Assembly (NCBI RefSeq): GCF_016432865.1
Contig: NC_067398.1
Span: forward strand, 661,416,001-661,480,000
Length of the DNA stretch: 64,000 nt
Source: Antechinus flavipes
Lineage: Eukaryota
Direction: 5' to 3'
Under the pieces are notes generated by a model. The model saw only the letters and a program-made list of their open reading frames with translations. It was not told the DNA's origin and did not search any database. A program made the position numbers and the translations under genes. Every line of letters begins with the position of its first letter. Position 1 is the stretch's first letter. Below are positions 861 to 32,344 of the stretch, piece by piece.

Positions 861-1103
<243 letters not shown>

Positions 1104-1237
1104 TCAACCTTCCCATGGAGCTCAGGGCCTGGCTCCCACCAGCCGAGAAATTGGGCTTTTTCAGATTTCTACCATTTACTCCAGTCCCCCTGCTTGCCTC
1201 CCAGAGACCCCGGGTTACACGCCAGTCCCCAATATCA

Positions 1238-1405
<168 letters not shown>

Positions 1406-1769
1406 TCACCTGGAGGACCCGCCAGGAGCCACAGGTAAGGGAATTAGAGCATTCTCTCTTTTGCGTCCAGGGAATCCTGCCCACCCTGGAGTTGGAAACC
1501 TAGAATTTTAGTCAGAAGACCTAACTAGACTCTAAGGCTATTTGCTGATTTTTGTTGTGATTTTAAGCAAGTCAATTAACCTCACAGGGATTCTGTTTTC
1601 TTCATTGTAAAAAAGTGACTGACAGAGTCCCTTACACATTCTAAATCCTTGGGGTCCCACTGAACTCCTACTTCACACTGGTCTGGAAGGAAATTTTTTG
1701 AGATCCGATTGCAGGGGGCAGGTTGGGCATTTTCCAGTGAGCAATACTATCAAAAGTAGGGAATCTTAC

Positions 1770-1792
1770 CTGTCCTTTATCTGCTTGGCAGC
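1770..1792 (-). CDS. FSD1: FSD1 exon 5 (23-nt micro-exon)
   Basis: tttttctag|GCTGCCAAGCAGATAAAGGACAG|gtaag; AAKQIKD; phases fit exons 4 and 6. Confidence 0.92.
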
Positions 1793-3859
1793 CTAGAAAA
1801 AGGAAGGAGAGAGTGAGAGTCATACTTTCCTGAGCAGGATGGGCCTAATCCATCTAACCCCTCATTTTATAGAGGGGAAACTGAGGCCCAGAGAAAAGGT
1901 AGAATTTACTCTCTGTCCCATAGTAAGTTAGCAGAAGAGCTGGTAAAAAGCCTCAGACTCAGGCTTTCTCATTCATTCCCTGCCCAGGCTCTTTCCACTA
2001 GAAAGTCGGGAAGAGAGAAGAGGAAAGACTGAAGAAATTCTTAGGTTTTAAAGCTGAAAGCAAAGCAGAAATCATCCAGTCAAACCCTTTTATTTTTACA
2101 GATAAGGAAACTGAGGTCCAGAGAAGTTACATCTGCTAAAGTCACTCAACTAGTGAGCAACAGAGAAAAGATTCAAACTTCAAATTCAGCACTCTTTGCC
2201 CTCCTCTAAAAGTACAAGGTATTTTATACACCTTTACCTAATAACATACAAATAAGCCCTTTAACTTTAATTCTTTGTGGCTGTCTTTTCCCTACCAGAC
2301 AGGTGAGGCCTTGAGGTCATAAGCTGCTCCTTCAAGGCCCAGCTCAGGTGTCACTTTCTCGGAGAAGCCTTCTCTGATTTCCCCTCTACCTCCCCAAGGT
2401 CCCCGGGTCCCCGGGCTCCCCTTGACCTCTCTTGGGACAGCGCCTGGCTGCGGGTGATGCTATACTATGGTCTCCAGAGGTAAAAGAAATAATGCACACA
2501 GGCAAAGGAGAGGTGCGTGGGGAGGGAGAGCAGGTGGCAACAACGAAAGAAATTAGAAGAAAAATCAGAACAAATGATGCCCTCGGAGAAATGGACGAGC
2601 AGGTAATAGAGAATCCCCCCTCCCCCAGTTATAGCTCCATGTGCAACCTTACAATATCAGGGGAAGCAGAGAAGGCTCCCAGTACCATGGGGGACCCCTT
2701 CTCCTGCACCACGGACAATAAATAGCACAGAACAGATCGGCACATAAGTTATGGTCTGCATTTTGGAGACTAGTAAGATCCCAGATCCATGTGAGTAGGA
2801 TCTCAATCATATTATAATTTATATCACAGTTACTGTGTGTGTATATGTGGATTTGACTAGAAATTCCTTAAGGGTAAGGGCCTTATTTTTCATCTATGTA
2901 TCCATAGCACTGGGTACAGGGCCCTGCATACAGCAGACACTTAAAAAATGTTTGAATCAATTCAACAAGCATTTATTAAGTGCCTACTGTATACAGCACA
3001 TGTTGTTAGGTGCTAAGAAATACACAAATGAGTAAAACTTTCTCATAGAAATCATAAGAGGAAGAAAGAATCTTCTTTGTATATTTTTTGTTTTCACTTA
3101 TTTATATTCATGTCGTATCTTCCAGGAGACTTTATGCTCTTGAGGATGGGAGCTGATTTTGCCTTTGTTTGCTGATATTCGGTGAATAGTATGGACTGTA
3201 CAAATGCTTGTTGGAGGAATCAAAAGAAATAACAGTTCCCATGTTTAAGTCAATATTTTAAAGTTTGCAAGGAGCTTTCCTCAGAATAGTGCTATGGGGA
3301 TGACAGTTACTATTATTCCCATTTTACAGGTGAGGAAATAGAGTGGAAGTCATTTACTTAAAATTATCTAGGCAGAAAGTTCCAGCACCAGGCCTCAACT
3401 CCAGCATTCTTTCCCCTGCCTCATACTGACCAAGGGAACAGCATCTGGTAATAGGATGGGTACAACTTGAATCCACAGATTGAATCCCTAGATTTGGGAC
3501 TGAAAGGTGCCTCAGAGGCCATCCTTTACAGTGCTCTCCCATTTTCCATTCTCCCAGGGTCTCCAAACCTGCCTTCTGGAGTTTCCAACACAGGGATTAC
3601 TTCTATTGGATAAATGTGTATATTTTAGGGTAGATAAAAGCTCTGGGATCAGATCTGGAAAGCCTGAGTATGAAGCCTAGCTCAAATATGTCTGATTGCA
3701 TGAAGCTGCCTTAGTCACTCTCCCTCTTTAGCTTCAGTTTCTTTAGCTCTCAATTAGGAATAGTAACTTATGCAGCTTAAATCCCAGATTGAGAGGAAAG
3801 CACTTAAAATATCAAGGAAAGGCTTTATTGCTATGATTAGATACTTGCCCATGTATGCA

Positions 3860-4080
3860 GGGCAGCTGGGTGGTGCAGTGGATAGAGTGCTAGGTCTGGA
3901 GTCATGGAGACTCATCTTTATGAATTCAAATCCAGCCTCAGATACTCATAGCTAGGTGCTCCTGGGCAAGTCAACACTGTTTCCTCAGTTTCCTCATCTG
4001 TAAAACAGGCTGGAGAAGGAAATGACAGACCACCCCTAGGATTTTTGCCAAGAAAACCCCTAAATGGGGTCACAAAAACC
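3860..4080 (+). mobile_element. MAR1-type marsupial CORE-SINE
   Basis: tRNA-like head (ggtggtgcagtggatagagtg), core cctcagtttcctcatctgtaaa, RTE-like tail ggagaaggaaatg...tttgccaagaaaacccc. Confidence 0.65.
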
Positions 4081-4280
4081 CAAAGGAAATAACTCAACAA
4101 CAACAACCATGTATGTTAACCCTTTGCAAATCTTAAAGTTCTTAATGTCAGCTGCTTTTTGTATCGTTGTTCCCATTATTTCCATAGTCCATATGAGGCC
4201 AGGTCTCCAGCCTTCTTGGGCAGACCCCCATCAAGACTCTCCCCACTCTCCCCATCTAACTGCAAACACAGGTCCCAAAC

Positions 4281-4382
4281 CTGGGGAAAATCCTGGTTGT
4301 CTGCTCCCTGTAGTGTCTGATTGGCTGTTTCCAGAAGTTCCTCCGAGCTCTCCAGAGCCTTGGTGCAGGCTGCCAGCTGGTT
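4281..4382 (-). CDS. FSD1: FSD1 exon 4
   Basis: 102 nt; cccacag|AAC...CAG|gtttgg; NQLAACTKALESSEELLETANQTLQGADNQDFPQ. Confidence 0.94.
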
Positions 4383-4682
4383 CTGTGGGAAGAGAGAGGG
4401 CAAAAGGGATAAGGTCAGTCAGACAAATCCTGAAGTGTCCCCATGCTCAGGGCCGGGCTCTGTGCTGAGCACCAAGGAACTGCAAATTTGGAAAAGGGCC
4501 AAGCCAAAGGGACTGCAAACCTTTGGGGCTCATTGAGCAAGACAGCCAGGGAGAAAGGGAGCAAAGGAAGCTTTTCTTTAAGCTTTTGCTCAATGACTCA
4601 AAGGCAGACTTCTAGCTGTGTCTTGTTATTATCTCATATCCATTTTTATATATCTTTATGTGTAAATAATATCTTGCTCTCT

Positions 4683-5502
4683 TATCAAACTGTGCATACT
4701 CTTTGATCCAGAAGCATTACTACTGGGCTTATATCCCAAAGAGATACTAAAGAAGGGAAAGGGACCTGAATGGCTGAATAAATTGTGGTATATGAACATT
4801 ATGGAATATTATTGTTCGGTAAGAAAAGACCAACAGGATGATTTCAGAAAAGCCTGGAGAGACTTACATGAACTGATGCTGAGTAAAATGAGCCGGACCA
4901 GGAGATCATTACATACTTCAACAACAATACTATATGATGATCAATTCTGATGGATGTGGCCCTCTTCAACAATAAGATGAACCAAATCAGTTCCAATAGA
5001 GCAGTAATGAACTGAACCAGCTACACCCAGCGAAAGAACTCTGGGAGATGACTAAGAATCACTACATAGAGTTCCCAATCCCTCTATTTTTGTCTGCCTG
5101 CATTTTTTATTTTCTTCACAGGCTAATCGTACACTATTTCAAAATCCATTTCATTTTGTACAGCAAAATAACTCTTTGGACATGTAGACATATATTGTAT
5201 TTAACTTATACTTTAACATATTTAACATGTATTGGTCAACCTGCCATCGTGGGGAGGGAATGAGGGGAAGTAGGGAAAAAGTTGGAACAGAAGGTTTTGC
5301 AATTGTCAGTGCTGAAAAACTACCCATGCATATAACTTGTTTTTTTTTTTAATTTTTTATTTAATAATTACTTTATATTGACACTCGTTTCTGTTCCGAT
5401 TTTTTTTTTCCCCTCCCTCCCTCCACCCCCTCCCCTAGATGGCAAGCAGTCCTTTATATGTTGGATAATGCATATAACTTGTAAATAAAAAGCTATAATA
5501 AA
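4683..5502 (+). mobile_element. Young 5'-truncated L1 with 19-bp TSD
   Basis: TSD aaataatatcttgctctct at 4664-4682 and 5503-5521; stop-free ORF2 C-terminus 4687-4950 (KLCILFDPEALLLGLYPKE...WLNKLWYMNIMEYY); 3' UTR and A-rich tail. Confidence 0.9.
5341..5467 (-). mobile_element. Short L1 3' end nested in the previous L1
   Basis: Poly(T) start; 15-bp TSD atgcatataacttgt at 5326-5340 and 5468-5482. Confidence 0.88.
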
Positions 5503-7424
5503 AAATAATATCTTGCTCTCTCTACTTGACTGTAAACTCCACAAAGGGAAGGATTATTCCACTTTTATCTTTGTATGCCCAGCATCTAGCACAATACCTA
5601 GTACACAGTAGATACTTAATAAAAGTTCTTTGACTGAAGGTCTTTAAAAATAAAGTGAGCCAACTTCTACCTTTTATAGATAAGTAAATTGAGGCTTGTA
5701 ATGGTTGATATGGACCAGATCACACAGTAAGTGGCAAAGCCAAGATTCACAAAAATCACAAAATCTCAGTGGTATAAGGGATTTTGAAGGCTAAAGTAAC
5801 ACATTATAAGCCTAAAGAGGTATCATGGATGGTCACTGCCAAGAAAGATTTCAGTTAATATAAAAAAATTTCTTAACAATCAGAACATCCCAAGAAGAAA
5901 AACAGACTCGTTCAAGGGGGCAGGAGGGAGCAATTTTAGAGGTCTATTACTATGGGTCTGAAGTCTATTGAGGTTTTTCCTGTTGAAGTATCCAGATTGG
6001 ATAATGTCTCCGGTCCCTTCCAGTTAACAGAGCCTTGTGATTGAACTGGGCCTTAACAAGATGACAAAGACAGCAAAATCAAACTTTATTTATAAGATTA
6101 TAAATCTAGACATGGAGGAGACCTTACAGGTCTTTATTTCATTCATACCCATTTTACAGATGAGGAAACTGAGGATCAGAGAGAAAGAATTTTCCTCACG
6201 ATCATTCAGCAAGTAAGTAGTAAAGCTGAGATTTGATTCCAAGCCTCTCCAACTCCAAACCTAGTATTTTTTCTATTATCACTAAATTGACTGTTCAGGG
6301 GAAAGAGAAAAGCCAGATCTGGCTTGAGGGAAAAGGGCATATAGGGGAGCAAAGGAAAGAGAAAGCTAAAAAAGGAAGATTGGGGGAAGGGCATAAAGGG
6401 CAGCAAATGCCAGGCTGCTGACATTGGACTCCCATTGTCAGCAGGAAGAGCTTCCTGAGCTGGGGCAGAATGTCACCAGAGCTGGTCATTAGGCAGACTA
6501 ATCTAGTAACTTGACATGGGGTGTTGGGAGAGTTAGAAAAGCTCCATGGAAGAAGTACAACATGAGCTGGAGTTTAAAGGAAGAGTAGAACTCAGATTCA
6601 GAAAGACTAGAAAATAAATAGATTAGAACAAGGGGGAGACATGAAGTCAAGAGAGATCTGTACTGCAGTTCCACCTCTGCTTTTTGCTGGTCTGTGAATA
6701 TGGAAAAATTATTTCATTTCTCTGAGCCTCAGTTTCTACTTTAGTGAAATAAGATAATAATACCTGTAATCACTTATCTCATTACGTTGCTGTGAGAATC
6801 AAATAAGAATGTATGTATAGCTAGATCCAGGTTAATGTGATTAATGAATCCCTTGAAGTGGGTGCATTATTCAAATCTGCATTGCAATTTCCATTGGGCT
6901 TGATATGGCAAGAATACAGGTTAAATTGATTTCAGGATCACAGGCTTTATTCAATGACCATATTTTACATAATTTTAACTTCAAAAAGTATGCATTGGAA
7001 TAAAGGGGATTCCTCATTTGCATTATTCTGGACCTAGTTATAAAGTGCTAATATTCAAATAGTATAAATATAAATATAAAGTATCATCACTTTAATGCTG
7101 GTACAATGATTTAAGCTAGTAATAGATGATGATGGAATCCTCAGACTCCTAGGTTTAGAATCGGAAAAGACCTCTTAGAGAAGCTAGTCTAATAGCCTTA
7201 TTTTAGAGATGAAGAAATAGGCTCAGAAAGGAAAAGTTACTTAAGGTTATACACTGCCCCAGAAAAGGAAGAGGGGTTTCCAAAGGGAGAGACATTTGCA
7301 AAGGTCTATCAGAAGGAAGGGAGTAGGACTGGATTAGGGAGCCACTAAAGGCTCTCACAGTTATCTAACCTTGCACCTCTTTCCCTGGATCTAGGAAATT
7401 TACTTTCAGAAGGAGCAGACTTAC

Positions 7425-7556
7425 CTGGAGCTCATAGATTCGGCTAGCTCGGTCTTGTTTGATTTTCATCAGCATGCCCTCCTTCAGCTCATCCAGTAGT
7501 GAGAACAGTGACTGGAACTCTGCCTCCAAGTCCTCTTGGACCTTGTTGGAGTTAGC
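7425..7556 (-). CDS. FSD1: FSD1 exon 3
   Basis: 132 nt; ggtag|GCT...CAG|gtaag; ANSNKVQEDLEAEFQSLFSLLDELKEGMLMKIKQDRASRIYELQ. Confidence 0.95.
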
Positions 7557-7589
7557 CTACCAGGAGAGTGTTTGGGAATCTTAGAACAA

Positions 7590-7740
7590 TAAATGTCAGA
7601 GCTGAAGGCTCTTAGAACATAGATATAGAATGAATGTTAGAATTGGGAGGGCTTAGAACACAGGATGCCAAAGCTGGGAGGAACGTTCAAGCATAGAAAG
7701 TGGGATATGGGGAAGACTTCAGAATATGGAATCTCAGCTG
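7590..7740. repeat. Degenerate 33-bp-unit array (reiterated MIR3/L3-type tail)
   Basis: Repeated agagctg.aggg..cttagaaca...aatgt units. Confidence 0.5.
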
Positions 7741-7790
7741 TTCCCAGGAGGCTGATCCATAGTCCTTCCCCTTTCCCCATTTCCTCTTAC

Positions 7791-7886
7791 CTCCACATTC
7801 AGCAGCATCTGTTTCAGGGCATAGATGAAGTTTTGTATCTCTTCATTCTTCACTGCCAGAGTTGTGATAATCTTCTTCAGTGCCTC
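7791..7886 (-). CDS. FSD1: FSD1 exon 2
   Basis: 96 nt; gcacag|GAG...GAG|gtaag; EALKKIITTLAVKNEEIQNFIYALKQMLLNVE. Confidence 0.95.
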
Positions 7887-8146
7887 CTGTGCCAACACCC
7901 AAAACACAAAGTCCCATCCTCACCTGAAGTCTATCTCATCCTTCCCAGCCCAAATGATCTACAATATCCTCTAGAAATCCCATGTCTCAAGATCCAAGGA
8001 TTCAAGGAAAACACACGAATTTGTGAGAACTGAATCTAGCTGGGAAGTAGGAAGGAGTACAGAGCTTGGGAAAGGGGTGATAGCGAGAGTGAAAAGAAGA
8101 GCTAGAGAAATGAAGAGGTTTAAAAAGTCAATAAATTGAGAGATGG

Positions 8147-15479: not shown

Positions 15480-15655
15480 TTAGCACTAAGCTTAGAATCA
15501 GGAGGACCTGAGTTCAATCCCGCCTCAGACACTTACTAGCTGTGTGTCCCTGGACAAGGCACTTAACTCTATTTGTCTCATCTGCAAAATGAGCTGGAGA
15601 AATAAATGGCAAATCACTCCAATGTTGTCTGTCATTCTCAAAGAGGATCAAAATG
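15480..15655 (+). mobile_element. MAR1-type SINE abutting the TMIGD2 pseudo-exon
   Basis: ggaggacctgagttcaatcccgcctcagacacttactagctgtgtg...ctgcaaaatgagctggagaaataaatggcaaatcactcc. Confidence 0.65.
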
Positions 15656-15695
15656 ACATTACTATGTTGGAGTCAAAGTATCAGTATACCACCTG

Positions 15696-15813
15696 TCAGT
15701 CAGAACTCCAGCAAGATTATGTGGGGGTCCAGAAACTAGTTGGCCTGGATCCAGGAAAATACCATCACCCTGGGTCAGGATGATGTGAATGCTAGTGATA
15801 GTGGGCACTATGT
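15696..15813 (+). pseudogene. Decayed duplicate of the 3' half of TMIGD2 exon 2
   Basis: About 77% identity (91/118 by hand alignment) to 17106-17222; reads SQNSSKIMWGSRN*LAWIQENTITLGQDDVNASDSGHYV. Confidence 0.88.
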
Positions 15814-15899
15814 ACAGTGTGTCCAGCTGTCCCTGATTAGACCAATGTGAGTTTGGAAAGCTCTAAGACAGATCGGGCACAAGTAGTTCAATGAACATT

Positions 15900-16090
15900 T
15901 GTGGTGGAAATGTCTCTAAACGCGTACGTCTCACGTTTCTTTTGAGCTCCAAAAATTCTGCTTCGTTCATACGATATAGTGGGTATGCCACGCTGGGCAA
16001 TCCTTTGCCAGTATCTCCCATGTCATTCAATTGTTTCCAAAGTTCTTCAGAGAGGGAGGGGCAGATACTGTGGCAGGAAGTGCTATCTGT
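15900..16090 (+). promoter_or_regulatory. Candidate TMIGD2 proximal promoter
   Basis: TGTGGT (RUNX) 15900-15905 overlapping TGGAAA (NFAT-type); CAGGAAGT (ETS) 16074-16081; AGATAG (GATA, minus strand) 16083-16088. Confidence 0.4.
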
Positions 16091-16239
16091 TAGGTTGGCC
16101 ATATACAGAGAACATATGGGTGGAAAGAGGTGGGGAGGGAGGGAGGAATAGAACTACCCTAAGAAACATTTGCTTCTATAGGCAGAAAGAAAGATCAGAG
16201 CTGACTAAAGGTAGAAAGGAGCCTGAGGGGAGAGAAGAG

Positions 16240-16285
16240 ATGGGATGTCTTCTTACAGATCTTTTTCTCCTGATGCTGTTGCCAG
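16240..16285 (+). CDS. TMIGD2: TMIGD2 exon 1 (signal peptide)
   Basis: 46 nt, ATG...CCAG|gtaag, phase 1; MGCLLTDLFLLMLLP. Confidence 0.85.
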
Positions 16286-16943
16286 GTAAGTACCCAAGTC
16301 AAAGGTCCCTGCCTACTAGGAGACCCCCTTAAGCCTCTTTCTTCCTGTGTCATCAAAGAAACCATAACCCTCTAGAATTCTAAGATAGCTGAAGTTTCTG
16401 TCCTCTCAGACCATGGGGATCTCAAAGAGTCTTGAAGGAGCCCTCCTTTCTCCTACTCTTTCTCTAAAATTTATCTATTAAGGAGTGTACCAAGGTCCAA
16501 GCTAACTGTCTATTGTTTGAATTTATGGGGACAGTATTTCACACTCTCACTGCGGATGAAAAAAACCACTGAATCATAAAACATAGATCATTAGTACTGA
16601 AAAGACTCTTAGAACATAGAAAACAGAAATGTCCAAAATAGAGAAGAAAGAAAAGCTAGATGGGAAGTGCTGGAACTGGAGGGATTTTGAACATGGTATC
16701 AGATCTGATAAAGATCTTAGCAGTAGAATATCAGAAAGGATGAGAGATTAAATAAAGTGCTCAGCCCCAGAAGTCAGAACTCCTGCTTCAATTCTGCTTT
16801 TATGAAGTTTCAGAAGTCCTTTGGGTTTCTCAGATTCTGTGATCTCTAGAAGAATTAAGCCTTCATTTGCTGCTTCCTTTTTCCTCTTCTCCTGCTCAAC
16901 CCCCCATAATCAACCGTGACCTTTCTTTCTTCCCCCAACCCAG

Positions 16944-17293
16944 TGCTCTCAGGAGAGACTAAGTTGATGGTGCAGCAAGAGGAACAAATCAAGGTGGACT
17001 CGGGTAGCAAAGTGAACATAGATTGCCAAGTCATCTGGACCCACTGGGAGCAATTCCGAGTAGAGTGGAAGAAGGATGGCAAAGAATTGTACCAGTCTCT
17101 GCCCATCAGTCAGAACTCTAGCCGGTTATATGGAGTTCCGGAAACATGTCGGTCCTCAGACGGAACAATACCATCACCTTGAGTCTGGATGATGTGAATG
17201 TTAATGACAGCGGGCACTATGTGTGTCATATGACAATGGAAATCCCAGAGCTCCAGATGGCTGAAGGCAATGGGACACATCTCATAGTCTCAG
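16944..17293 (+). CDS. TMIGD2: TMIGD2 exon 2 (IgV domain), 1-nt frameshift near 17119-17125
   Basis: cccag|TG (alternative acceptor 16953, same frame)...TCAG|gtatg; first frame VLSGETKLMVQQ..DCQV..RVEWKKDG..SQNSS, second frame NNTITLSLDDVNVNDSGHYVCHMTMEIPELQMAEGNGTHLIVS. Confidence 0.9.
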
Positions 17294-17379
17294 GTATGGG
17301 GAGAAGGCAGGAAGGCAGGGAGAACGAACAGTAGAGGAGGAGCACAGTGTCATCTTAACAATCCAGTGTTGATCATGTC

Positions 17380-18620
17380 GGATCATTCTCACCCTAAACT
17401 GTGGCATTTCCCATGAGACTGAACTCTGAAATCCCTCTCCTGTCCTACTCTCTCTCCCTCACTCTTTGCACATCTATTGTTTGTCTTCACAGTTATCTCT
17501 GATCCCTCTATCTTCCCATCTATTCCCCATTCATCCTTCTTGTTCTGATCTTACTTTCCTTCCTTCATAGTCTCAGTTCTGTCATTAACCAAGGTCTGTC
17601 CTTGAATCCCATGCCATCTTTTTCTATCCTTACTTCAATATTGCTAGATCTCAACTTTGAGCTGTACACTTCCCCTCCTCCCTCCATCCATTTTCTTATT
17701 GCCAATTCTTGTTGATTCAATCCAAGACTGTGCTGGAGGCAGCTTGATTTGGCTCCAGATTGCTGTTTTTCAGTGTGAGCATTTATTTACATCTCAGAAA
17801 TTGGCAAATTCTACAATGAAGCATTTGATTTTTTTTCTTGATTATTTAGATTTTAAGAAGTGATGGAGAAAGTGCTAATAATGCTGATTAAACTTGAAAG
17901 TGTCACATAAACATTTTCCGAGGGGGAAGGGAAGCCAATTGTTAAACATTTACCAGGTTCTATCTTCACTCTATGTCCTATCTTTTTTAGAAATCCACAA
18001 CACCTCTCACCTAAACTACCTTAATGGTTTCCTAATTACCTCCCCTGCTTCCAGTCTCTTCCCTCTTTGATCTATCCTGCAGGGCCCCACGGTCTTGAGT
18101 ATAGCCGTGTCACTCTTCACTCAAAAATCTTCAGTTGTCCCCTATTGCCTCTTGAATAAAATACAACTTCCTTAAAGGTCCCTTCCAGTTCATTCATTCA
18201 CATCAAAATACATTTATTAAGCTTTTATTATATTTATTATTATATCATATATTCAAGCATTTATTAAGCCAGACTCCACAGTCTGACTCCAAACTATCTT
18301 TCCAGATTTCTTTTGTATTCCTCCCCTTCATGGACACTGTGTTCCAGCCAAATTGAACTCTCCATATCTGGCTGACATTCGATGCCCCCTCCCTGACTTT
18401 GTGCCTTTGAATAGGTTGTTCTCCTCCAGATGCCTGGAACTCACTAGTGCCCTCCTCACTGTTTCTCAAAACCTTTTTCTTCCTTCATTTCAGTGTTACA
18501 TCTTCTGGAAAGCCTTTCTTGGATCCCTCCAATTTTTACCTCTTTCACCTTCTTCAAAGGATCTTTTATTTCTTTGTCTGGGTCCATTTTGTATCTTCTT
18601 CCAGCCTACCCAGTAATATG
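17380..18620 (+). mobile_element. L2 LINE remnants in TMIGD2 intron 2
   Basis: Pyrimidine-rich L2 ORF2/3' pattern with tcattcattc tail motifs. Confidence 0.5.
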
Positions 18621-18924
18621 TAAGTCTTTTGAGAGGAGAAACTATTTTGGTTTTGCATTTGTGCCCCTGACAAGCTGAGGGGACTCAAGTGTTTGTGCAA
18701 TTCAACAACTTCTTTTTACAGATGACTCAGGGAGGCCTAAGGTTACAGAGCAACTCAAGCCAGTCCCTGTTTCTCCAAATTTCAGACTCTTCCTGCATAT
18801 CAAACTCCACCTTGTACTTATCTCACTCTCTATTATACCACAGCTATCGAAGTAGGATTATATTTAGCATAGGGTTAACCTTGCTCACAAGCTTGATAAA
18901 TGTCGGTTCATAAAGTGAACAAAT

Positions 18925-19040
18925 GGGAGAAGTGGATGGAGTACCAGCCCTCGAGTTATGAGGACCTGAGTTCTAATCTGCTCTCAGACACTTAACACTT
19001 ACTAGGTGGATAACTTAACCCTAGCAAGTCACTTACCCCC
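18925..19040 (+). mobile_element. Short WSINE1-type SINE
   Basis: ccagccct.gag...ggacctgagttc.aatc...ctcagacacttaacactt...aagtcacttacccccaattgcctccaaaaaa. Confidence 0.6.
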
Positions 19041-19561
19041 AATTGCCTCCAAAAAAGTATATAGTGAATGAATGGACTGGAAAGGATCTTAAAGGGAGCT
19101 GAGTAGGATGCTATTATTTGACAGAGGAGAAAACTGAGGTCCAGAGCTAGGAAGTCCAAGGTCACATAGACAGTGACAAGGTCTCACTAATGACAAGGTC
19201 ATTCTAATCTCATAGGAGATCAGTGGCAGAACCAAGACTAAACATTCAAGTATCCTAACTTCCAGAACAAGATTCTACCGAGGAAAATTTTTTATGGGTT
19301 TCCTCCTTTCTCATCCTCAGATTTCTGGCTGATTTTGGCCGATTTCCCAGTCATCTCCTCTCCTCCCTCCCTCTCTGACAGCATCACCCAGAAGTGGTTC
19401 TCATAGCCTCTGGCCTGGCCCCTAAAGGACACCCTGTGATGTCCCCAGATTTTCCATGTGCCAGCCCATGACACCCGCCCCCAGACATCCCAGCTCTCTG
19501 AAGCTCAATGGCTTTGCTGGCACGGTGCCAATCTGTGCCACCCACACGCCTACCCTGTTTT

Positions 19562-19635
19562 CATTCTGCCAGGAGGGGCCAATTACCAATTACCAGTTTC
19601 CATTCTGCTAGGAGGGGCCAATTACCAATTAGCAG
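19562..19635. repeat. 39-bp tandem duplication
   Basis: cattctgc.aggaggggccaattaccaatta.cag at 19562 and 19601. Confidence 0.9.
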
Positions 19636-20192
19636 AGACATAGGAGTCAGTGTTGGCTCTGGCCCGGCCCCTGGGCAAGGACCCAGCATTGACAGCTGCT
19701 GCACCCCCTCCCAGATCTTTCCCTTACTTCACGGGGATGGGGGTGGGAGAAGAATTTACACCAGGGGTGCCCTTCTCCATTCCCTGAAAAAATTATAGGG
19801 GATGGAGATTTAATCCTGAGTTCTCTACACATGTGCCTTGGATGGCTGAACATACCAGGACCCCCCAGAGATAGAGATCACCTCCCAACTCGGGAGTGAG
19901 GGGGTCATATTTCTTCCTTCTTATGAGAGGGGGTAGTGGTGGACCTAGCAACTTCCAGAGACATGACCATCATAGAGAACTAAGTGTGCCGTCCCCTCCC
20001 CAGTGCATTAGTGATCTCTGAAAATCACAGGAGCTTTAGTGAGCACACAGAGGGGTCAGGTTCTGATCCTCAGAGGAAAGGAAGTGGGGAGAAGCAAAAC
20101 TGCTAAAAGCTCAAAACCCCTCCAGAGAAGTGAGGGCAAAAACACACCAAGGGAGATGGTAGAGTGAGCTATAGAGATTTCTCTCTTTGCAG

Positions 20193-20228
20193 ATTTCTTC
20201 ACAAGCAGCTGGATCAAAGGCTTTCCAG
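20193..20228 (+). CDS. TMIGD2: TMIGD2 exon 3 (stalk)
   Basis: 36 nt; ctctttgcag|AT...CCAG|gtaag; DFFTSSWIKGFP, phase 1-1. Confidence 0.8.
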
Positions 20229-20647
20229 GTAAGAGGTAATGCCCATCCTAGTATCTCCCGGTTCCTACTGCCAGATTGTCCCTTCTCCCTGTGAGATGAT
20301 CCATATTAATCAGCTTGGCTATCATCAGCATCATACGTTTCTTAGAACAGAGAATAGAGTGAAAACCTAAAGGATTCTTGAAGTATAGAATGTCAGTGTC
20401 AGGAAGAGAGGGGCCCTAGAAACCATGTAGTTCATTTTACAGATGGGAAAACTGAACCTGGGGAGGAAGGCAGATTTGCTGAAGGTCTTGCAGTGAATGA
20501 GCCAGAGGCAGGAGCGGAGGGTTTAGACCCAGGGTCTCCCGATTCCCAACCCATGGCTCTTTCTGCTGCACTTGTTTTTCATTGCCAATCTCCCCTCTTC
20601 ACGACGTCTCCACTGGCTCTCCTATCTCTTCTGATTATCTCCTCAAG

Positions 20648-20746
20648 ATTTTTTCTTATGGCTGCTGGTGGCGTGTGTCATGATAGGATTGGGGGCTGTG
20701 TTGGGAAGAATGATCTGGAGATGCTTTAGAAGAAGCACAGACTCTG
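20648..20746 (+). CDS. TMIGD2: TMIGD2 exon 4 (transmembrane)
   Basis: 99 nt; ctcaag|AT...TCTG|gtgag; DFFLWLLVACVMIGLGAVLGRMIWRCFRRSTDS. Confidence 0.82.
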
Positions 20747-21120
20747 GTGAGTAGTCCCCCAGCACCGGGCAGGCCCCAGGGGTGCAGTGTCCTCCCTTCC
20801 GCTCCCCCATCCCAGAGTCCCGGCCAGACCCCACAAGCTGCCTCTCAGTCAGTGTCTCAGTAATTAGCAAACTGTGTTCTCAGCCATTGGTGGAAAAAAG
20901 GAGGATGGCCCAATTTGATCCACAGCTGCTGCTTTTATCCAATTACTGCTCCCTAGGTCACCTTCCCAAAGGGATTCTCTATCCCCAGAGATAGCTATTC
21001 CACCCAGGTCCCGCTCCTGGTGTCAGAGCCGGGGAAGATGACTGAGAAATTGTTAGCTCCAATGTTAGCCCCGGAGAAAGATATTTGGACTGAGACTCAT
21101 GCTCCTCTGTCTCTTCACAG

Positions 21121-21278
21121 AGAACCACTTTTATGGCAATGTTCTCTATTTCCACAAAGAAACTAAGGGGATCACGCCAAGCAAGGACAAGCCTCTGCAA
21201 TGGTCACCAGAGAAAAAGAGAGGAGAGAGCATCTACTCTGCTGGTCCCCAACTCCCATCCCCACCCCCTAGGGCGTAG
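21121..21278 (+). CDS. TMIGD2: TMIGD2 exon 5 (cytoplasmic tail)
   Basis: ctcttcacag|AG...TAG; ENHFYGNVLYFHKETKGITPSKDKPLQWSPEKKRGESIYSAGPQLPSPPPRA*. Confidence 0.88.
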
Positions 21279-21332
21279 TCCCCTGGAACCGTCCCCTGCC
21301 CACTCCAACCTGCATCAGGCTAGTTCTTAGCC

Positions 21333-21338
21333 AATAAA
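21333..21338 (+). terminator. TMIGD2 polyadenylation signal
   Basis: AATAAA 55 nt after the stop codon. Confidence 0.65.
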
Positions 21339-21944
21339 ACCAGCTTGCTCCCTGCCCCCAACCCTCACTTAACCTAGGATTTCTTTGCTCAGTCCAGTGA
21401 GGTGTGGGGGAGAGTCAGCCTTCCTGAGAGTGGGAAAGTGAGGGAGGACTAAGGTTTCCCAGAAGCTGGGAGGTTGCCTCTTTAGCTAAGTCATAGAGGA
21501 TAGGATCCAATGCTCAAAGACGAGCCAGAGCTACATTTTTGGAAATGGACACACAAGAAGGTTATACTTGACTCTGCATATTTGTAATAAAGGATTTATT
21601 TTTTTATTTGTTTTTAGGGGGGGAGGAGGAGAAAATGGAGAAAATAAATGCTTGTTGATTGAAAAATAAAGTGAAAAAACAAAAGAACCAAGATCATCTG
21701 ATATATGACTCTGATATGTGAGACTGCTTCTCATACATTTTTTCCATCATTTCCTAGACACTACCAGAGCTTGTCTCCCCTTCCCCCATCCCTAATGCCC
21801 GACTGACTTAGTATCCTATGGTCTCTCCATAAGGCCTAGTATCAATAAACCAGAGGCCTGTGTTTGATGATGAGGGCAGGATGTATGATGTTTGATGTGT
21901 GGCCTGTAAGACCCCAGAATACCTGAGAAGGAATAGGGGAAGGA

Positions 21945-24839: not shown

Positions 24840-25026
24840 TCAGGGGGTCTGCACAGTGATGGGGTGCAGCAAGGCCAGGTGCTCGGAGCCTTGCACTGGC
24901 AGCGGGCGGATGCTGTAGTGGTGCACCACCTCAGGCACACTGGAGAAGACCCCACTGTGCTGACCCAGCACAAACTTGTTGTCCTTTGTCCGGCTGAATT
25001 TCATGTGCATGTAGCCCTGGCTGCCC
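24840..25026 (-). CDS. SHD: SHD last coding exon (SH2 C-half)
   Basis: 187 nt; ttcccag|G...TGA; GSQGYMHMKFSRTKDNKFVLGQHSGVFSSVPEVVHHYSIRPLPVQGSEHLALLHPITVQTP*. Confidence 0.95.
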
Positions 25027-25593
25027 CTGGGAAGGAAGAGGAGACCCTGGGTCAGAGGGAGGTTGGGGGGGGGGGTTAAGCTCCGGAAGGACTGGGGGGC
25101 GGGGGGAAAGGGACTTAGCTAGCCTCAGTCAGTCAGTCACTGAGACGCCGTCCCATAGAATCAGGCCCAAGGATGTGACTACCGCTCTCCCCTTTGGGTC
25201 CCAGGTCCCCAAGGGCAGATGGCCTCCATGGCCTGGATCTCGAGGCACCTGCGGCTGTCGCCATTCTACAGAGAAATAAACTAAGCAGGAGACGCTGCTC
25301 TAGAAAACATTAGCCTTATTCTCCCTCCCCTTGTGGGGCTCCTCAAGCTTCCTATCGGGGCAGAAAGGCTTAGAATAGCAGCCCCCTGACAGACCCCGTC
25401 CGCCAGCCTGCCCAAGGGCACAGAGGTGCCCTCCCTGTTTAACAGTCACTTGGCGACTCACGTTGTCCAATGGGGCCCTTCCCTCTCTAGCTCCCGGGAG
25501 GACACTGACCTCTTCCAGCTCTCCCTCCCCACTGGAGTCTGACCCTCCAGGTTGCTCTCCCTTGGGGCCAGGGGCCTAGAACCCAGGGCTCAC

Positions 25594-25713
25594 CTGAGGG
25601 ACAGAGAGAAGTCCGGATGACTGGTCTCACTCTGCCTGACAAGGTAGCTGCCCTCCCTGCAGAGGGACAGGAGGTTCTCGGCCTCGGCCCGGCTCAGGGA
25701 ACCATGGAACCAC
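25594..25713 (-). CDS. SHD: SHD coding exon 5 (SH2 N-half)
   Basis: 120 nt; ccgtcag|G...AG|gtgag; WFHGSLSRAEAENLLSLCREGSYLVRQSETSHPDFSLSLR. Confidence 0.95.
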
Positions 25714-26008
25714 CTGACGGGAGACAGGGAGAAACAGGGAGTGAAGCTGAGGGGGCCAGGGCCACAGCCTCAGGGATAGACCAGGCTCTGCCCCTCCCCT
25801 CCCCTTATCCCAGCTCTGTTTCTAACTTGGCCCGTGCCCGCAAACAAACCCAAAGGAGAGAGACTTGATCTCTTAGGGCCTGGGAATTGAGAGACCATTA
25901 CTCTGGAGAAGGACCATCAAAGTCAAGTGCTGTGCTGCGGGTCTCTTCTGCCTGGGGGGGAACTCTTTCCTGAAAGGGGCTATATTTGAACTTGGTCTCA
26001 TCACTCAC

Positions 26009-26177
26009 GGCTGCTTCTCCAGGGGCAGGGCTGGGTCCACACGCTCGGCTGGCTGGGGGCTATGCTCCTCTGGGTTGGGCCCCTTCCCCACCCAGCCGCC
26101 AGAGGTCTTAGCTGGGGGCTTCCGGAGCTCCTTGGCCAGGCCTGGGGCCCGTTCCCACTCAGGATTCTCAAACTGCA
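26009..26177 (-). CDS. SHD: SHD coding exon 4
   Basis: 169 nt; gatccag|TG...CC|gtgag; VQFENPEWERAPGLAKELRKPP...SPQPAERVDPALPLEKQP. Confidence 0.94.
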
Positions 26178-26600
26178 CTGGATCAGGCAGAGAAACCAAA
26201 GAATGCTTTTCTTTAACCAGCTGGTCCTTCCAAGGGCAAAAACCAGACTCGTCGTTGGATTCAGAGAAGTGAGCCTCGGGGAGGGGAGAAGTGGGAATCA
26301 GGGGATGCTCTCAGGGCTTAAGAGGAGTAGGGTTTCCATGCATTAAAAATGAAACTAGTCTGATGAGTGACCAGTCACAGCCAGGGACTGGGAAAAGATT
26401 CAACCTGGATAGGTCTCAGAATGAGGGACTGGGCAGAGTCAGCACTTAGGGGAGTTATCAGAGGGAAAGCTCTGGAGGCAAAGGGTGACCCATTTTTAGC
26501 ATTAAGCAAGGAATGGGGTTGGCAGGGTGTATATGTTAGGGTGGCGGAAGGGAGACCAAAATGGGAGAGCCAACAAGGCCAGGGTTAGTCAGAGGCCTCA

Positions 26601-26801
<201 letters not shown>

Positions 26802-26808
26802 TTAATTC

Positions 26809-26900
26809 TTTTTACAAAAAAAATAACCTTTTACTTTTCAAAACACTTGCAAAGATAGTTTTCACCATTCACTTTTGCAAAATCTTGTGTTCCACATTTG
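26809..26900 (-). mobile_element. L1 3'-end fragment with 9-bp TSD next to the SHD exon 3 acceptor
   Basis: TSD gtttaattc at 26800-26808 and 26901-26909; reverse complement resembles the L1 3' end at 28670-28750. Confidence 0.75.
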
Positions 26901-27329
26901 GTTTAATTCCATAGACATTTATTAAGTGCTTACTACATATTTGGTAGGCAGTGTGGCTCAGGGGATAGAAAGGTAGCCATAAAGCCAGGAAGCTTTGAGT
27001 TCAGATCTCAACCCTAATGCAAACTGGCTGTGTGACCCTGGGCAGAACATTTACCTTCTTAGTACTCTAAGCAACTCCCCAAGACTTGTAGAAAAGGTGC
27101 ATAATGAAACTGGTGAAGGCAATTTCCTCACCTTGGAGTTTCCTATAAAATTACAGGTCCAGTCCCTATCTCTGCCCTTCTGCACTTAATGTGCTGGGGA
27201 CACAAAGAGGGGAAGATAATACAGTCCCCACCCTCAGGGAGCTTACAGTCTAATAGTAAGGATATGCTACCTTGGCAAGGTAAGAGAGCGACAGGGTGAA
27301 GAAGAATTCTAGACAAATGACTTTGGGTG

Positions 27330-28920
27330 GGGGGAAGACTGATTAAGATGGCACAAGAATAAGCTAGACAGCCTCAGTTTCTCCTCCAAGACAAACGCAG
27401 TCCTAAGAAGAGCTCTAGACCTAGAAGTGACAGGAAATCTAAGAAGCAACCACAATGGACCTTTTCAGTTCAAGGTCAAAAACTGGAACCAAAAGCAAAT
27501 GACCAGGTCAAGGACTGTGACAAGATAGCTCTGGATTGCAGACACAGCCAACTTAGCTCCCAGGACTCTCAATAGACAGCACTGTATAGTCACCTTAAAA
27601 CAAATTTCAGGGTTTACAAATCATGTACTCATCCCAGGCCCAGGCCAGCAGTGTGGGGTCATCTAGAAAGGGCAGAATTTTGGCCACAGAGCTCAGGTAA
27701 GAGAGCAGAGTCTCGCAGGCTGAACTGTGATCCCAGAGTCAACGCTAGACTTAATAGAGCTAGATGAGCAGCACAAGGCAGTTTTTAGACTCAGAGAAGG
27801 TTGAAGACATCCCTGGACCAAAGGCATGGGGTCTCCCAGAAGGACCTGATGGAGTATTCAGTCCCAACTCTCCCCAGAGAAGAATCAGAACAAGGGTCGC
27901 CAATAGCACAATCATTCTCTACCTTCTGAACCCTTTAGTTAGTAGACAGGAGCTGGGCCCAACTCTACTGGAGTCCCATCCAGGAACATGCTGACAGCTC
28001 TGTGGTCTAGATTAAACTCAAGGTGCGGAACCTGGAAATGCCCAGGAGGGCAGCAACCAGACTGTACTCATGATATGATCCCATAGGATCCACCAAAAGC
28101 ATGTAGCTTCCTGGCTCAACCCTCAAAGAATACAGCATTCAGTACCCAAAGAATATAGCAGCAGGACTCCAAATAAAACAGATCTGGACTGTATAAGGCC
28201 ACAACCATCCTGTCCAAAGTGCTCAGAACTTTGTCATAACACAAAGTATGGAAATAAGCCTGGAAGAATGAGCAAAGAATGTGCCATGCCCAAGGCACCA
28301 ACCCAAAAGAGAAGAATAACTTTAAAATATCAGGAAAACTTAAAAAAAAACTTAACCCTAAGATCAATTAATATTCCTAAAAGAAATGAATCCTTTTTAA
28401 AAAGTTTAAAATAATGCGATAAATGAGAGCAATGAGGGAAAGAGTGGGAAAGAAATGAGAGTTTTGGAGGAGAGACTTGGAAAAAGGATTAACAGTTTAA
28501 CAAATGTTTGCTTTCTTTCTTTCTTTTTTTCCTAAAAAGGTCAAAAGATCTGATTTTTCTTGTGCAGCATGATAAATGTGGAAATATATTTCTAAGAATT
28601 TTACATGTTTAACCTCTATTGGATTAGTTGTTGTCTAGGGGAGGGAGAAGGTGGGGAAAGAAGGAAAAAAAATTTGGAACACAAGATTTTATAAGGATAA
28701 ACACTGAAAACTATCTTTGCATGTATTTTGGAAATAAAAAGCTATTATTAAAAAAAAAGAAATCATAAAAGAAAGCTGCCCATTCATATTAGAACAAGAG
28801 GACAGGATGAAAACAGGAAGATTCTATCAACCCTCAAAATGAAAAATCTCAGGAATATTATAACTAAAACCTAGTGCTTCCAGGTCAAGGTGCAAATTAT
28901 AAGCAAAAGTCTCTAGCATA
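27330..28920 (+). mobile_element. Old L1 5' UTR/ORF1-like remnant interrupted by a younger L1 3' end (about 28500-28760)
   Basis: gattaagatggc start motif; ORF1-like AT-rich segments; L1 3' UTR ending gctattattaaaaaaaa. Confidence 0.45.
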
Positions 28921-29129
28921 TTGGAAGAAAGCAGGAACACTGTCAGCTTGGAGGCAGGGGAAGGAACACTTGTCAGACTGGGAGAAGGCAACAACACTTT
29001 TAACTTGGAGTAGGGAAAAGCTTCTTGATTGGGATGGAATCAAAGATGAACTTTTGAAGAAAGAGAAAGATTCCCTTATGCGAGAGAGGGAGCTGTCCCC
29101 ATCTCATGAGCCAATTCCTCAAGAATTAT

Positions 29130-29680
29130 GAAGAGAGTAAGAATTAGGCAACCAGGAGAGAATGTAAAGTGAGAGAAGAGTAATAAAGCTGGAAAGGTAG
29201 GCAGAGGCCTGACTGTGGATGGTCATAAATGCCAGTTTATGGAATTAATCTGTCCTTTATCCTGAAGACAATAGGGAGCTATGGAAAGTTTTCAAGTGGG
29301 AGAGATAACATGATCTATCTGTTTTACAGTATCATTTTGGCAATTGTGGATTCAATTCATTGAAGAGGGAAGAAATGAATCAGGAAGAGACCAAATGGGA
29401 GGTAACTATAATCCTCTGTTGGCAGCTTTGTTAACAAGGATAGGGGACAGATTTGAGAGATGCAGAAGTAGAATGACCTAGAGTTGGTAACTTGACTGAA
29501 AGTGGAAGTCAAGGGAGGGGAAAGAGCTTCTGAGATTGAGTAAGAAATACAGGATGGTTGATAGTATCATCAATAGATATGGGAAAGTTGGTAAGAGAAG
29601 ATGATTTTTTCTTGGGGGGAAAAGGAGCACAAGAGGGATAATGATGAATTCTGTTTTGGACACATTTGAGTATAACTTTT
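29130..29680 (-). mobile_element. L2 LINE fragment
   Basis: Purine-rich reverse-orientation L2 pattern. Confidence 0.5.
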
Positions 29681-29749
29681 TTCGAGAAATCCAGTAACAC
29701 AAAGAATTTACAAAAAGGAGACACAGAATCCCAGAGACACATAATACAA

Positions 29750-30440
29750 TCTTGGGCTACCTGAAGAGAGGTATGATGTCCAGAATTAGGAAAGTGACAG
29801 GTTTATAATATTCTGTCCTGGTTGACCCTCCTCTGGAGTACTTTACTTCCAGTAGGTACCATATTTGAGGAAGAACAATGATCAGCTGAAGCCATTCATG
29901 TTGAAGGATCTCACTTTTATATAGTGTTTCAGAGTCTGCAAATTGTTTTATGTATATTATGCCATTTGATTCTCACAGCTATCTTGTGGGGTAAGGGTTA
30001 TTGTTATTGTCATTCAACTTAGGGAAGAGGGTAAGTGATTTGGCTAGTCGTGGCTGAGTCAAGATTTTAACTCGTCTTCCTGACAAAGATCCAGTGCTTG
30101 ATCCACTTTGCCATCCACCTGATAAATCACTGGAAGATAAGAATGACAGCTTCAAGTATTTGAAAGATCTTCATGTGAAAAAGGATTGGATTTGTTTTTT
30201 CTTGTCCGGGAAGATAGAATTAGGAGCAATGGATAAGAGATTCAAAGAGGCTGAATTAGGGTTGATACCAGATAAAGCTTTTTAGCTTTAGATTTATTCC
30301 AAAGTAGAATGGGCTGCTTCAGGAGCAAGTGGGCTCCCCTTCACTGGAGCTCTTAGAGTAAAGACACTCCAGTTAAATTGTAAAGAGGTTTCTTTATTCA
30401 GGTATGTTTTGGGCTGGATCACTTCAGAGGTGCCTTTTAA
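29750..30440 (+). mobile_element. L3/CR1 3' fragments
   Basis: cttgggct...gaagagagg...ctggagtac; gacagcttcaagtatttgaaag; tail ctagatcacttcagaggtgcc-like. Confidence 0.55.
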
Positions 30441-30762
30441 CTGAAATTCTGTGCTTCTAGGAAATATGGAGCTGGTGCTCAAGAGGCAGATCAGGCTAGC
30501 CCTGGAGATTGAGATTTGGGAGTCACTTAGAAGAGATCATTAAAGCCACGGAAGTGTCTGAGATAGTGAAGGGAGAAGTCGTAGAGAAAGAATAGAAGAG
30601 CGAGTGAATGGGTCACTGATGAGAGCTAGTTTCTACACTTCCCTTCCTGGTGGGGGTTGGAGGTGGGATTAGGAATGTCAGCCAGGACTAGACTTCAAGG
30701 ACAAATGGAGGACCTGGAGAGGAAGCTGTATTACTCCCCCACTCTAATGCAGTGACACTCAC

Positions 30763-30889
30763 CTGTTACCACACACTGAGCATCATAGGGTTCCATGTAG
30801 CTGTTGTCAGGGGGCAGCTGTTCTGAGGCACCCAACTGAGCTTCAGGCTGGGCATCAAAGGGGTCCGAATACTCAGCATCATCTGCAGT
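30763..30889 (-). CDS. SHD: SHD coding exon 2
   Basis: 127 nt; cacctag|ACT...ACAG|gtgag; TADDAEYSDPFDAQPEAQLGASEQLPPDNSYMEPYDAQCVVT. Confidence 0.93.
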
Positions 30890-30959
30890 CTAGGTGAGGA
30901 CAAGGGACTCAGTGTTGTTCTCTGACATCTCTCCCAAATACTCCCTTCTCCCCATTCTC

Positions 30960-31270
30960 AGCCCTTCTGCCTTGATGTTCTAACTCCGGAGTCTCTTTCA
31001 TCATTTATGTCGCATGGTTCATGGGTCCTTCTAACATTAAAATCTGTGTTTGAGGTCTCTTTCAACTTGGACATTCTTTGTTTAAATCCTTTCCAATCCT
31101 TTCATTCTGTTTTATTGACCTTCCATTTCTGACATTCTGTGTTTAAGATCTCTGCCAGCTCTGACATTCTCTGCTCTAAGGTCCCTTCTGACTCAAATAT
31201 TCTGTATTCTAAAGTCCAAATTCTGACATTCTGTGATTTATTGCCATTCCAGTCCTGACATTCTCTTTCA
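30960..31270. repeat. 33-bp-unit array, reverse orientation, 6-8 decayed units
   Basis: Repeated ctctgacattctgtgtt.taag.tcc units following a MIR-like segment. Confidence 0.65.
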
Positions 31271-32035
31271 AAGCTCATTCGTCCCCTTATCTTAGATTGA
31301 TTCTTCTATCCTTTCTCTTCTATCAGCAGTCACAGCCTCTCCCTCATTCTGTCCGTGGAGCCCTGGCCATTTTTCCTATTTAATCACCATCTATCACATC
31401 TAATATCTAGTTCATCGCCTGAAGCCCCTTCCCAATCAGGCTCCCATGATCACACACAACCTTTCTTGCCCCTGACAGATCTGATGCTGGTCCTCCTGAG
31501 GCTTTCTCCTTTTCATCCACTACTCTCAGGCAGCCTTTCCCAGCTCCTGGAGGTGTCACAAGGCAGATCTTTGACTTCCCTTTCTTCACAGAAAATATAT
31601 ATACACATGTGTGTATACATATATTTTATTTATATATGTTTATGTGTGTACACATACACACAAAGATGTAGGATTTAGAATTAGAAGAAACCAATTCATA
31701 TTCCAACTCCTGCCTTTAATAGTTATATGAAAATGGACAAACCTTAGACTGTTCCTTCACCTGTAAAATGGACTTAATACCATTTTTGCTGTCTAACCTA
31801 GAGGGTTATTTCTTGGAAAGAGCTTTGGCTAGAGGAACATGAGTTATTGTTATCCAATTTTTTTTTTTTTTTTTGGTCTGCTCTTCAACCCGACACTCTT
31901 GACCTTGGGCAGTATACAAAGACAGTGAATCACTTTTCGGAGGTCACCTAGGCTGTGGCCGTTCTATGTGGGGTAGGGCTGAACTGTCTAAGGGCTAAAT
32001 TCCTCCTCCTCTCCTCCCCCCACTCAGGTACTTAC

Positions 32036-32344
32036 GTTATCCTCCTCAGGCGTCCCCAGCAACATCTTACTGCGGTTCAGGTCGCCTGACTCCACCTTGA
32101 TGAGCCGGTGTTTGGGGGAGCCGTATTGCTGGTCCCCAGAACAGGAAGGTTTGCTGGGGCAATTGAGGCAGGATGACTCGGGCTCCTCCTGCCCATCTCC
32201 ATCTTCATAAGGATCCTCAAAGTCCAGACTTTTTTGAACCCGATAGGCCCGGAAGATATCACTCTCTGTATAATCGGGTTTGGGGGGTTGTGGGGGTGGC
32301 CTTCGTCCACCAAAGCTCAGATAGTCCCTGAGCCACTTAGCCAT
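32036..32344 (-). CDS. SHD: SHD coding exon 1
   Basis: 309 nt; ATG...AAC|gtaag; MAKWLRDYLSFGGRRPPPQPPKPDYTESDIFRAYRVQKSLDFEDPYED...YGSPKHRLIKVE. Confidence 0.96.

Follow-up and report, generated by a model that had tools for sequence, protein, structure and literature searches.

The window, the whole 64,000-nt stretch of Antechinus flavipes DNA that was analysed, carries the A. flavipes orthologue of TMIGD2 (CD28H), a member of the CD28 family. One base, the A of a Gln codon, is missing from the exon that encodes its Ig domain; this base was present in all four sets of short-read contigs placed on the window, and the other exons of the gene were intact. The choice between a true allele and an assembly error is nearly even and we lean slightly to the former: there is about an even chance that only the haplotype in the reference assembly lacks the base, as a null allele that is real, private and probably heterozygous in the reference male. 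TMIGD2 binds HHLA2 (B7-H7) and co-stimulates T and NK cells, functions that are putative for the antechinus protein.

TMIGD2 and the frame break in its Ig exon

Exon 2 of the gene, coding for a single Ig V-set domain, extends from 16944 to 17293 on the forward strand between an acceptor AG (16942-16943) and a donor GT (17294-17295). It measures 350 nt in the window and 351 nt in the four read sets; a second AG provides an alternative acceptor at 16953, which gives an exon of 341 nt. The frame beginning at 16946 reads LSGETK...NIDCQ...FRVEWKKDGKELYQSLPISQNSS, or in fuller form LSGETKLMVQQEEQIKVDSGSKVNIDCQVIWTHWEQFRVEWKKDGKELYQSLPISQNSS followed by 19 unrelated residues, and runs on into a TGA at 17180-17182, and the frame beginning at 16945 contains a TAG at 17119-17121, after which it reads PVIWSSGN...DSGHYVCHMTMEIPELQMAEGNGTHLIVS (more fully, PVIWSSGNMSVLRRNNTITLSLDDVNVNDSGHYVCHMTMEIPELQMAEGNGTHLIVS) as far as the donor. 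The first Cys is encoded at 17024-17026, the second at 17224-17226 and the EIP motif at 17239-17247. On the Pfam V-set profile of 109 positions the N-terminal piece of the exon covered positions 1-39 and the C-terminal piece positions 62-108, so that the exon represents one Ig V domain in two frames with the break at 17123/17124. Translation and Pfam thus agreed with the original prediction, which had described an exon of 350 nt (341 nt from the alternative acceptor) between phase-1 splice sites and an Ig domain divided between two frames with these two stop codons.

A HMMER search with the 57-aa C-terminal piece gave as the best single-domain match a protein of 229 aa (86% identity, E 1e-22), namely TMIGD2 isoform X2 of the dunnart Sminthopsis crassicaudata, and eutherian TMIGD2 proteins ranked next. 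When dunnart TMIGD2 was used as the tblastn query, the two pieces of exon 2 were recovered with E values of 2e-30 and 2e-27, far beyond chance, and a word search with dunnart TMIGD2 yielded 11 further marsupial TMIGD2 entries; the proteins recovered came from devil, tammar, wombat, brushtail possum, sugar glider, bilby and two opossums, and a 146-aa TMIGD2 of A. flavipes was recovered as well. Both exon 2 pieces, searched against the PDB sequences, gave generic Ig matches only, with no TMIGD2 entry among the matches listed, and a word search with the 88-aa frameshifted ORF of the window, directed at exon ORFs called on other assemblies, gave no match.

CD28H is characterized by a single V domain, EIP after YxC, a YxNx motif in the tail and synteny with fsd1 (PMC11599192). 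The antechinus gene encodes a single extracellular V-set domain with the two canonical Cys residues, which is broken in the frame of the window and continuous in the read sets; E-I-P follows YxC in the CDR3 region (YVCHMTMEIPEL, EIP at 17239-17247), and the cytoplasmic motif Y-[E/G/V/T/A]-N-[V/I/M/T] (YxNx) is present in the last exon as YGNV (21132-21143). An FSD1-like gene (861-7919, reverse strand; fn3 and SPRY, NCBI product of 496 aa) is located upstream, head to head with TMIGD2, and an SHD-like gene (24843-32344, reverse strand; SH2, NCBI product of 360 aa) downstream, tail to tail, and STAP2, which also belongs to the conserved synteny, would fall outside the window and was not seen. 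Other marsupial TMIGD2 genes are likewise placed between FSD1-like and SHD-like genes. The synteny was settled by the products and strands in the NCBI gene table, the exon ORFs of both neighbours being visible in the window; Pfam analysis of these ORFs named only fn3 (weakly) and SH2, and a PDB search with the fn3 exon of the FSD1-like gene matched titin only.

CD28HL1, a paralogue of CD28H kept in marsupials, shows synteny with man2b, kiaa0232 and tcb1d14 and has a Y[E/D]SF tail motif (PMC11599192). The antechinus gene resembles it in the single V domain and in YxC...EIP of the CDR3 region but, unlike CD28HL1, adjoins FSD1 and carries YGNV, and is thus CD28H proper; CD28HL1 was rejected on account of its different synteny and tail motif. 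The identification as TMIGD2 (CD28H) in the original prediction was therefore upheld by orthologue matches, motifs and synteny.

The gene follows the exon plan of other marsupial TMIGD2 genes (Sarcophilus harrisii, 227 aa; Sminthopsis crassicaudata XP_074140744.1, 229 aa), with a signal peptide, one V-set domain, an optional 12-aa exon, a transmembrane segment and a tail, all in phase 1. Exon 1 (16240-16285, forward strand) contains the ATG and the signal peptide (MGCLLTDLFLLMLLP plus 1 nt), ends at a phase-1 donor GT (16286-16287) and was a 100% match to residues 1-14 of dunnart TMIGD2 in tblastn. Between the Ig and transmembrane exons lies the optional exon of 36 nt (DFFTSSWIKGFP; 20193-20228, forward strand, phase 1-1), which the NCBI antechinus model, devil TMIGD2 and dunnart isoform X1 also contain. 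The transmembrane exon (DFFLWLLVACVMIGLGAVLGRMIWRCFRRSTDS; 20648-20746, forward strand) was located by tblastn and is intact between AG and GT, as is the last coding exon (21121-21278, forward strand), which encodes the cytoplasmic tail with the YGNV motif, terminates at a TAG (21276-21278) and shares its C-terminus, ..PRA, with devil TMIGD2. All exons other than exon 2 were open, with AG/GT sites and phase 1 throughout, and no second lesion was found in any TMIGD2 exon or splice site.

The exon lengths add up to 653 nt, and with one more base to 654 nt, corresponding to 217 aa, or 229 aa with the optional exon; these are lengths obtained by arithmetic, the exons having been translated and searched singly rather than as a joined or repaired protein. 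The 229 aa that one added base had been expected to restore were therefore correct when the optional exon is included, but the residue expected at this place, P or T, was not, as it is Q. Alignment of exon 2 with six orthologues, proposed as a check in the original prediction, placed the two pieces of the window directly next to each other with exactly one column absent, which is Q in all Australian marsupials aligned and R in Monodelphis; all the other marsupial TMIGD2 proteins aligned had Q or R at the position of the missing base. The pieces themselves were 89-91% identical to devil TMIGD2, with matching EIPEL and YGNV motifs. The reference thus differs from other marsupial TMIGD2 genes in its Gln codon between ISQNSS and VIWSS, which is short of a base that congeneric read sets possess. 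The second half of exon 2 has a fossil partial copy 1.4 kb upstream (15692-15835, forward strand; 76% nucleotide identity over 97 nt, one stop), which reads PVSQNSSKIMWGSRN, a stop and LAWIQENTITLGQDDVNASDSGHYV, and which matched residues 69-116 of dunnart TMIGD2 (tblastn E 5e-13). This copy has one more base at the lesion site than exon 2 of the window and a single frame across it. Taken together, the absent alignment column and the extra base of the fossil copy indicate an ancestral exon 2 of 351 nt. Downstream of the lesion the frame is fully open and conserved (89% identity to devil TMIGD2), so that any lesion must be extremely young.

Origin of the missing base

Runs of several related organisms contain this stretch of the window, and short-read Logan contigs of four public runs were placed on positions 15600-21500. 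Two runs (X1 and X2) are two samples of organism A from one study (P1); X4 is organism B and X6 is organism C. Short-read whole-genome sequences of two A. flavipes males (the reference 'AdamAnt' and 'Ant2'), A. arktos and A. argentus belong to one BioProject, and A. stuartii short reads originate from an earlier study (PMC9290055). From this sample list we infer that organism A is A. flavipes, organisms C and D are A. arktos and A. argentus and organism B is A. stuartii, and that either X1 or X2 is probably the reference male himself. X2 showed no substitution relative to the window over 19028-21500 (2.5 kb) and nine over 15651-18992, X1 showed 19 in all, and X4 and X6 differed by ∼1%. Given the 2.5 kb free of substitutions, X2 is apparently conspecific with the reference; the same apparently holds for X1, with X4 and X6 apparently being sister species.

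All four runs had an A inserted behind 17123, at full depth and within a single contig of 1.7-3.4 kb that spanned exon 2 (the k-mer depth of the X2 contig, 28.8 versus 30, differed within noise). Where the window has AGC CGG TT on the forward strand across 17123-17124, the runs read AGC CAG GTT ATA TGG, that is S-Q-V-I-W as in the orthologues, in an open exon of 351 nt. The missing base is thus the A of a Gln codon (CCAGG to CCGG), and the CCC-to-CC homopolymer slip suggested in the original prediction had to be rejected.

An inactivation of TMIGD2 throughout the species or lineage, as an independent loss comparable to that in mouse and rat, is highly improbable. Its sole support comes from the reference frameshift and the truncated NCBI model. 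Against it, the 351-nt exon was intact in all four samples, of which two are apparently conspecific and two apparently represent sister species, and the EIP and YGNV motifs are retained; TMIGD2 proteins exist in devil, dunnart, tammar, wombat, possum, glider, bilby and opossums. A unitary pseudogene would be expected to have a lesion that is fixed or shared by relatives, and the lesion occurred in none of the four read sets; nor did the other TMIGD2 exons show the further decay expected of one (stops, indels or lost splice sites). An intact exon in conspecifics and congeners, with no other lesion in the gene, refutes a loss at the species or lineage level, and the headline of the original prediction, that a marsupial may independently have lost the receptor, accordingly fell. 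The HHLA2-TMIGD2 pair is absent from mouse and rat, and CD28H is seemingly absent from squamates, with none found in amphibians (PMC10173190; PMC11599192). The antechinus case concerns the same gene, dispensable in some lineages, but whereas those absences are fixed and lineage-wide, here the species has an intact gene and only a single assembled haplotype carries the lesion. A false lead is thereby removed: marsupials including Antechinus keep TMIGD2, and there is no new loss of the HHLA2-TMIGD2 axis to explain.

What remains are the two alternatives that had been offered alongside that headline, a recent or polymorphic null and an assembly error; both, like the gene and its family, are ordinary. 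Pilon by default corrects an isolated error that is contradicted by all reads and leaves sites with roughly 50:50 support untouched. The reference assembly was built with wtdbg2 from Canu-corrected PacBio CLR reads and polished in one Pilon round that used the reference male's own 50x reads (PMC9290055). The male could carry CCAGG on both chromosomes, the base having been dropped by PacBio CLR/wtdbg2 and missed by the single Pilon round, an explanation to which we assign somewhat less than an even chance. It is in line with the A in all four contig sets, including two apparently conspecific samples of which one is probably the reference male, with the residue that all marsupial orthologues have at this position, with the perfectly open downstream frame and with an assembly method prone to residual indels. 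A one-base deletion in an otherwise perfect ORF, seen in the assembly only, is also what residual indels in once-polished CLR assemblies look like. Such indels are, however, usually found in homopolymers or badly polished patches, whereas the TMIGD2 site is neither a homopolymer nor of low complexity, lies in unique sequence of normal depth and has a private SNP beside it. Moreover, no other indel private to the window was seen in 5.9 kb among the differences listed (40 of 94 substitutions and 12 of 14 indels), and an isolated error contradicted by all the 50x reads of this animal should have been fixed by Pilon. At the homopolymer indel sites listed (A7, T8, C4 and C5) the window agreed with at least one read set in each case, indicating that the patch was polished well.

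The private SNP, a synonymous T (TCT) at 17098 on the forward strand, is C in all four runs and, at 25 nt from the deletion, marks the reference haplotype; X1 and X2 in addition depart from it at 17109. What the contigs show is thus another haplotype, and they do not bear on the reference one, a point in favour of a real allele. If the reference male is one of X1 and X2, this 26-nt cluster is heterozygous in him. A short-read check at the lesion had been proposed in the original prediction; on the contigs of the four runs it gave the extra base in every case, but on a haplotype that differs from the reference at 17098. Among the differences listed, those in exon 2 were synonymous at 17044 and 17098 and non-synonymous at 17109 (S/N) and 17159 (R/K), and the private differences in 5.9 kb (substitutions plus indels) numbered 3 + 1 in the window, 10 + 3 in X1 and 1-2 + 1 in X2. 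The window thus has about as many private differences as X1 and X2, and natural variation is enough to explain them.

A real allele fits a lesion site that is neither homopolymeric nor repetitive, the behaviour of Pilon, which, given 50x reads from this male, should repair a clean error and would leave a 50:50 site, and the dispensability of TMIGD2 in several lineages (PMC11599192, PMC10173190). It has to be set against the occurrence of the deletion in no read set and solely in a PacBio CLR and wtdbg2 assembly polished once. Logan contigs drop minor alleles, so that they show the presence of the intact allele but can show neither the absence of the deleted allele nor heterozygosity, and the equation of X1 or X2 with the reference male depends on the sample list of the published study. 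That the deletion is present in the DNA of this animal, that it is heterozygous and that nonsense-mediated decay (NMD) acts on its transcript is what we infer under the preferred reading of a real allele.

Consequences of the deleted allele and the annotated model

On the deleted allele the spliced frame would stop at the premature TGA (17180-17182, forward strand) after 94 residues (15 codons, one split codon and 78 codons), before the second Ig Cys and the membrane anchor. This TGA is 111 nt from the exon 2 donor and junction (17293-17182). NMD obeys a 50-55-nt rule, under which a stop 111 nt before the junction should make the mRNA a target for NMD. Any protein made would be a secreted stub of 94 aa devoid of strands C'' to G, the second Cys, the transmembrane segment and the YGNV tail; the length of this product, its lack of the second Cys and of a transmembrane segment and the 111-nt distance are as the original prediction had stated them. 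Skipping of exon 2 would stay in frame, as all exons are in phase 1, and would yield a receptor without an Ig domain. The other chromosome of a heterozygote, and other animals, would supply normal TMIGD2 of 217/229 aa.

That the reference male carries a TMIGD2 null allele segregating in the wild population of Samford Valley has, in our estimate, just short of an even chance. If true, there would be natural heterozygous, perhaps also homozygous, knock-outs of a T/NK co-stimulatory receptor that is absent in mice, in a wild marsupial with males that do not survive beyond a single breeding season. A real allele would also be one more ordinary loss-of-function variant of a reference animal.

Positions 7146-31278 of the window are base-for-base identical to the locus on CM028217.1 (chromosome 1) of GCA_016432865.2 that encodes the NCBI model of A. 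flavipes TMIGD2. This model comprises 146 aa with half an Ig domain, without a signal peptide and without any Pfam domain, and comparison by eye with the translated window showed that it starts at an internal Met (17146) downstream of the frameshift and continues through the optional exon, the transmembrane exon and the tail exon (17146-21278, forward strand). The model arose in annotation as a by-product of the missing base and is unfit for comparative work.

Tail, intron and flanking sequences

Following the stop of the tail exon (..PPPRA), another frame of the window (21220-21327, forward strand) reads SPLEPSPAHSNLHQASS, which is similar to the longer C-terminus of dunnart (..VPSHSSLHQAGS) and to that of wombat (..SPEPSQTHLSLHPASS). 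Antechinus and devil, both ending in ..PRA, thus seem to have in common an older, fixed frame change by which the last ∼13 residues of the tail were lost. The optional 12-aa exon is still recognizable in wombat as DSVKGSWIKVSQ. The first coding exon of the SHD-like gene (32027-32344, reverse strand; MAKWLRDYLSFGGRRPPPQPPKPDYTESDIFRAY...) is situated in a GC-rich island (GC 0.58 at 32-34 kb).

Intron 1 has two polymorphisms in A. flavipes: an 8-nt GGGTTCTA at 16784 is absent from the window and X1 and present in X2 and in organisms B and C, and an A-run at 16559-16565 is seven long in the window and X1 and six in the other runs. Intron 2 contains an extremely high-copy interspersed repeat (18949-19145) with a summed contig depth of about 330,000-620,000 in all four runs, and the contigs of every run break there. 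The fossil copy of exon 2 is present in X1, X2 and X6 as well; it is abutted by a very high-copy repeat (summed contig depth >10,000 at about 15600-15680), and many contigs that originate elsewhere connect 15659-15680 with 15813-16034.
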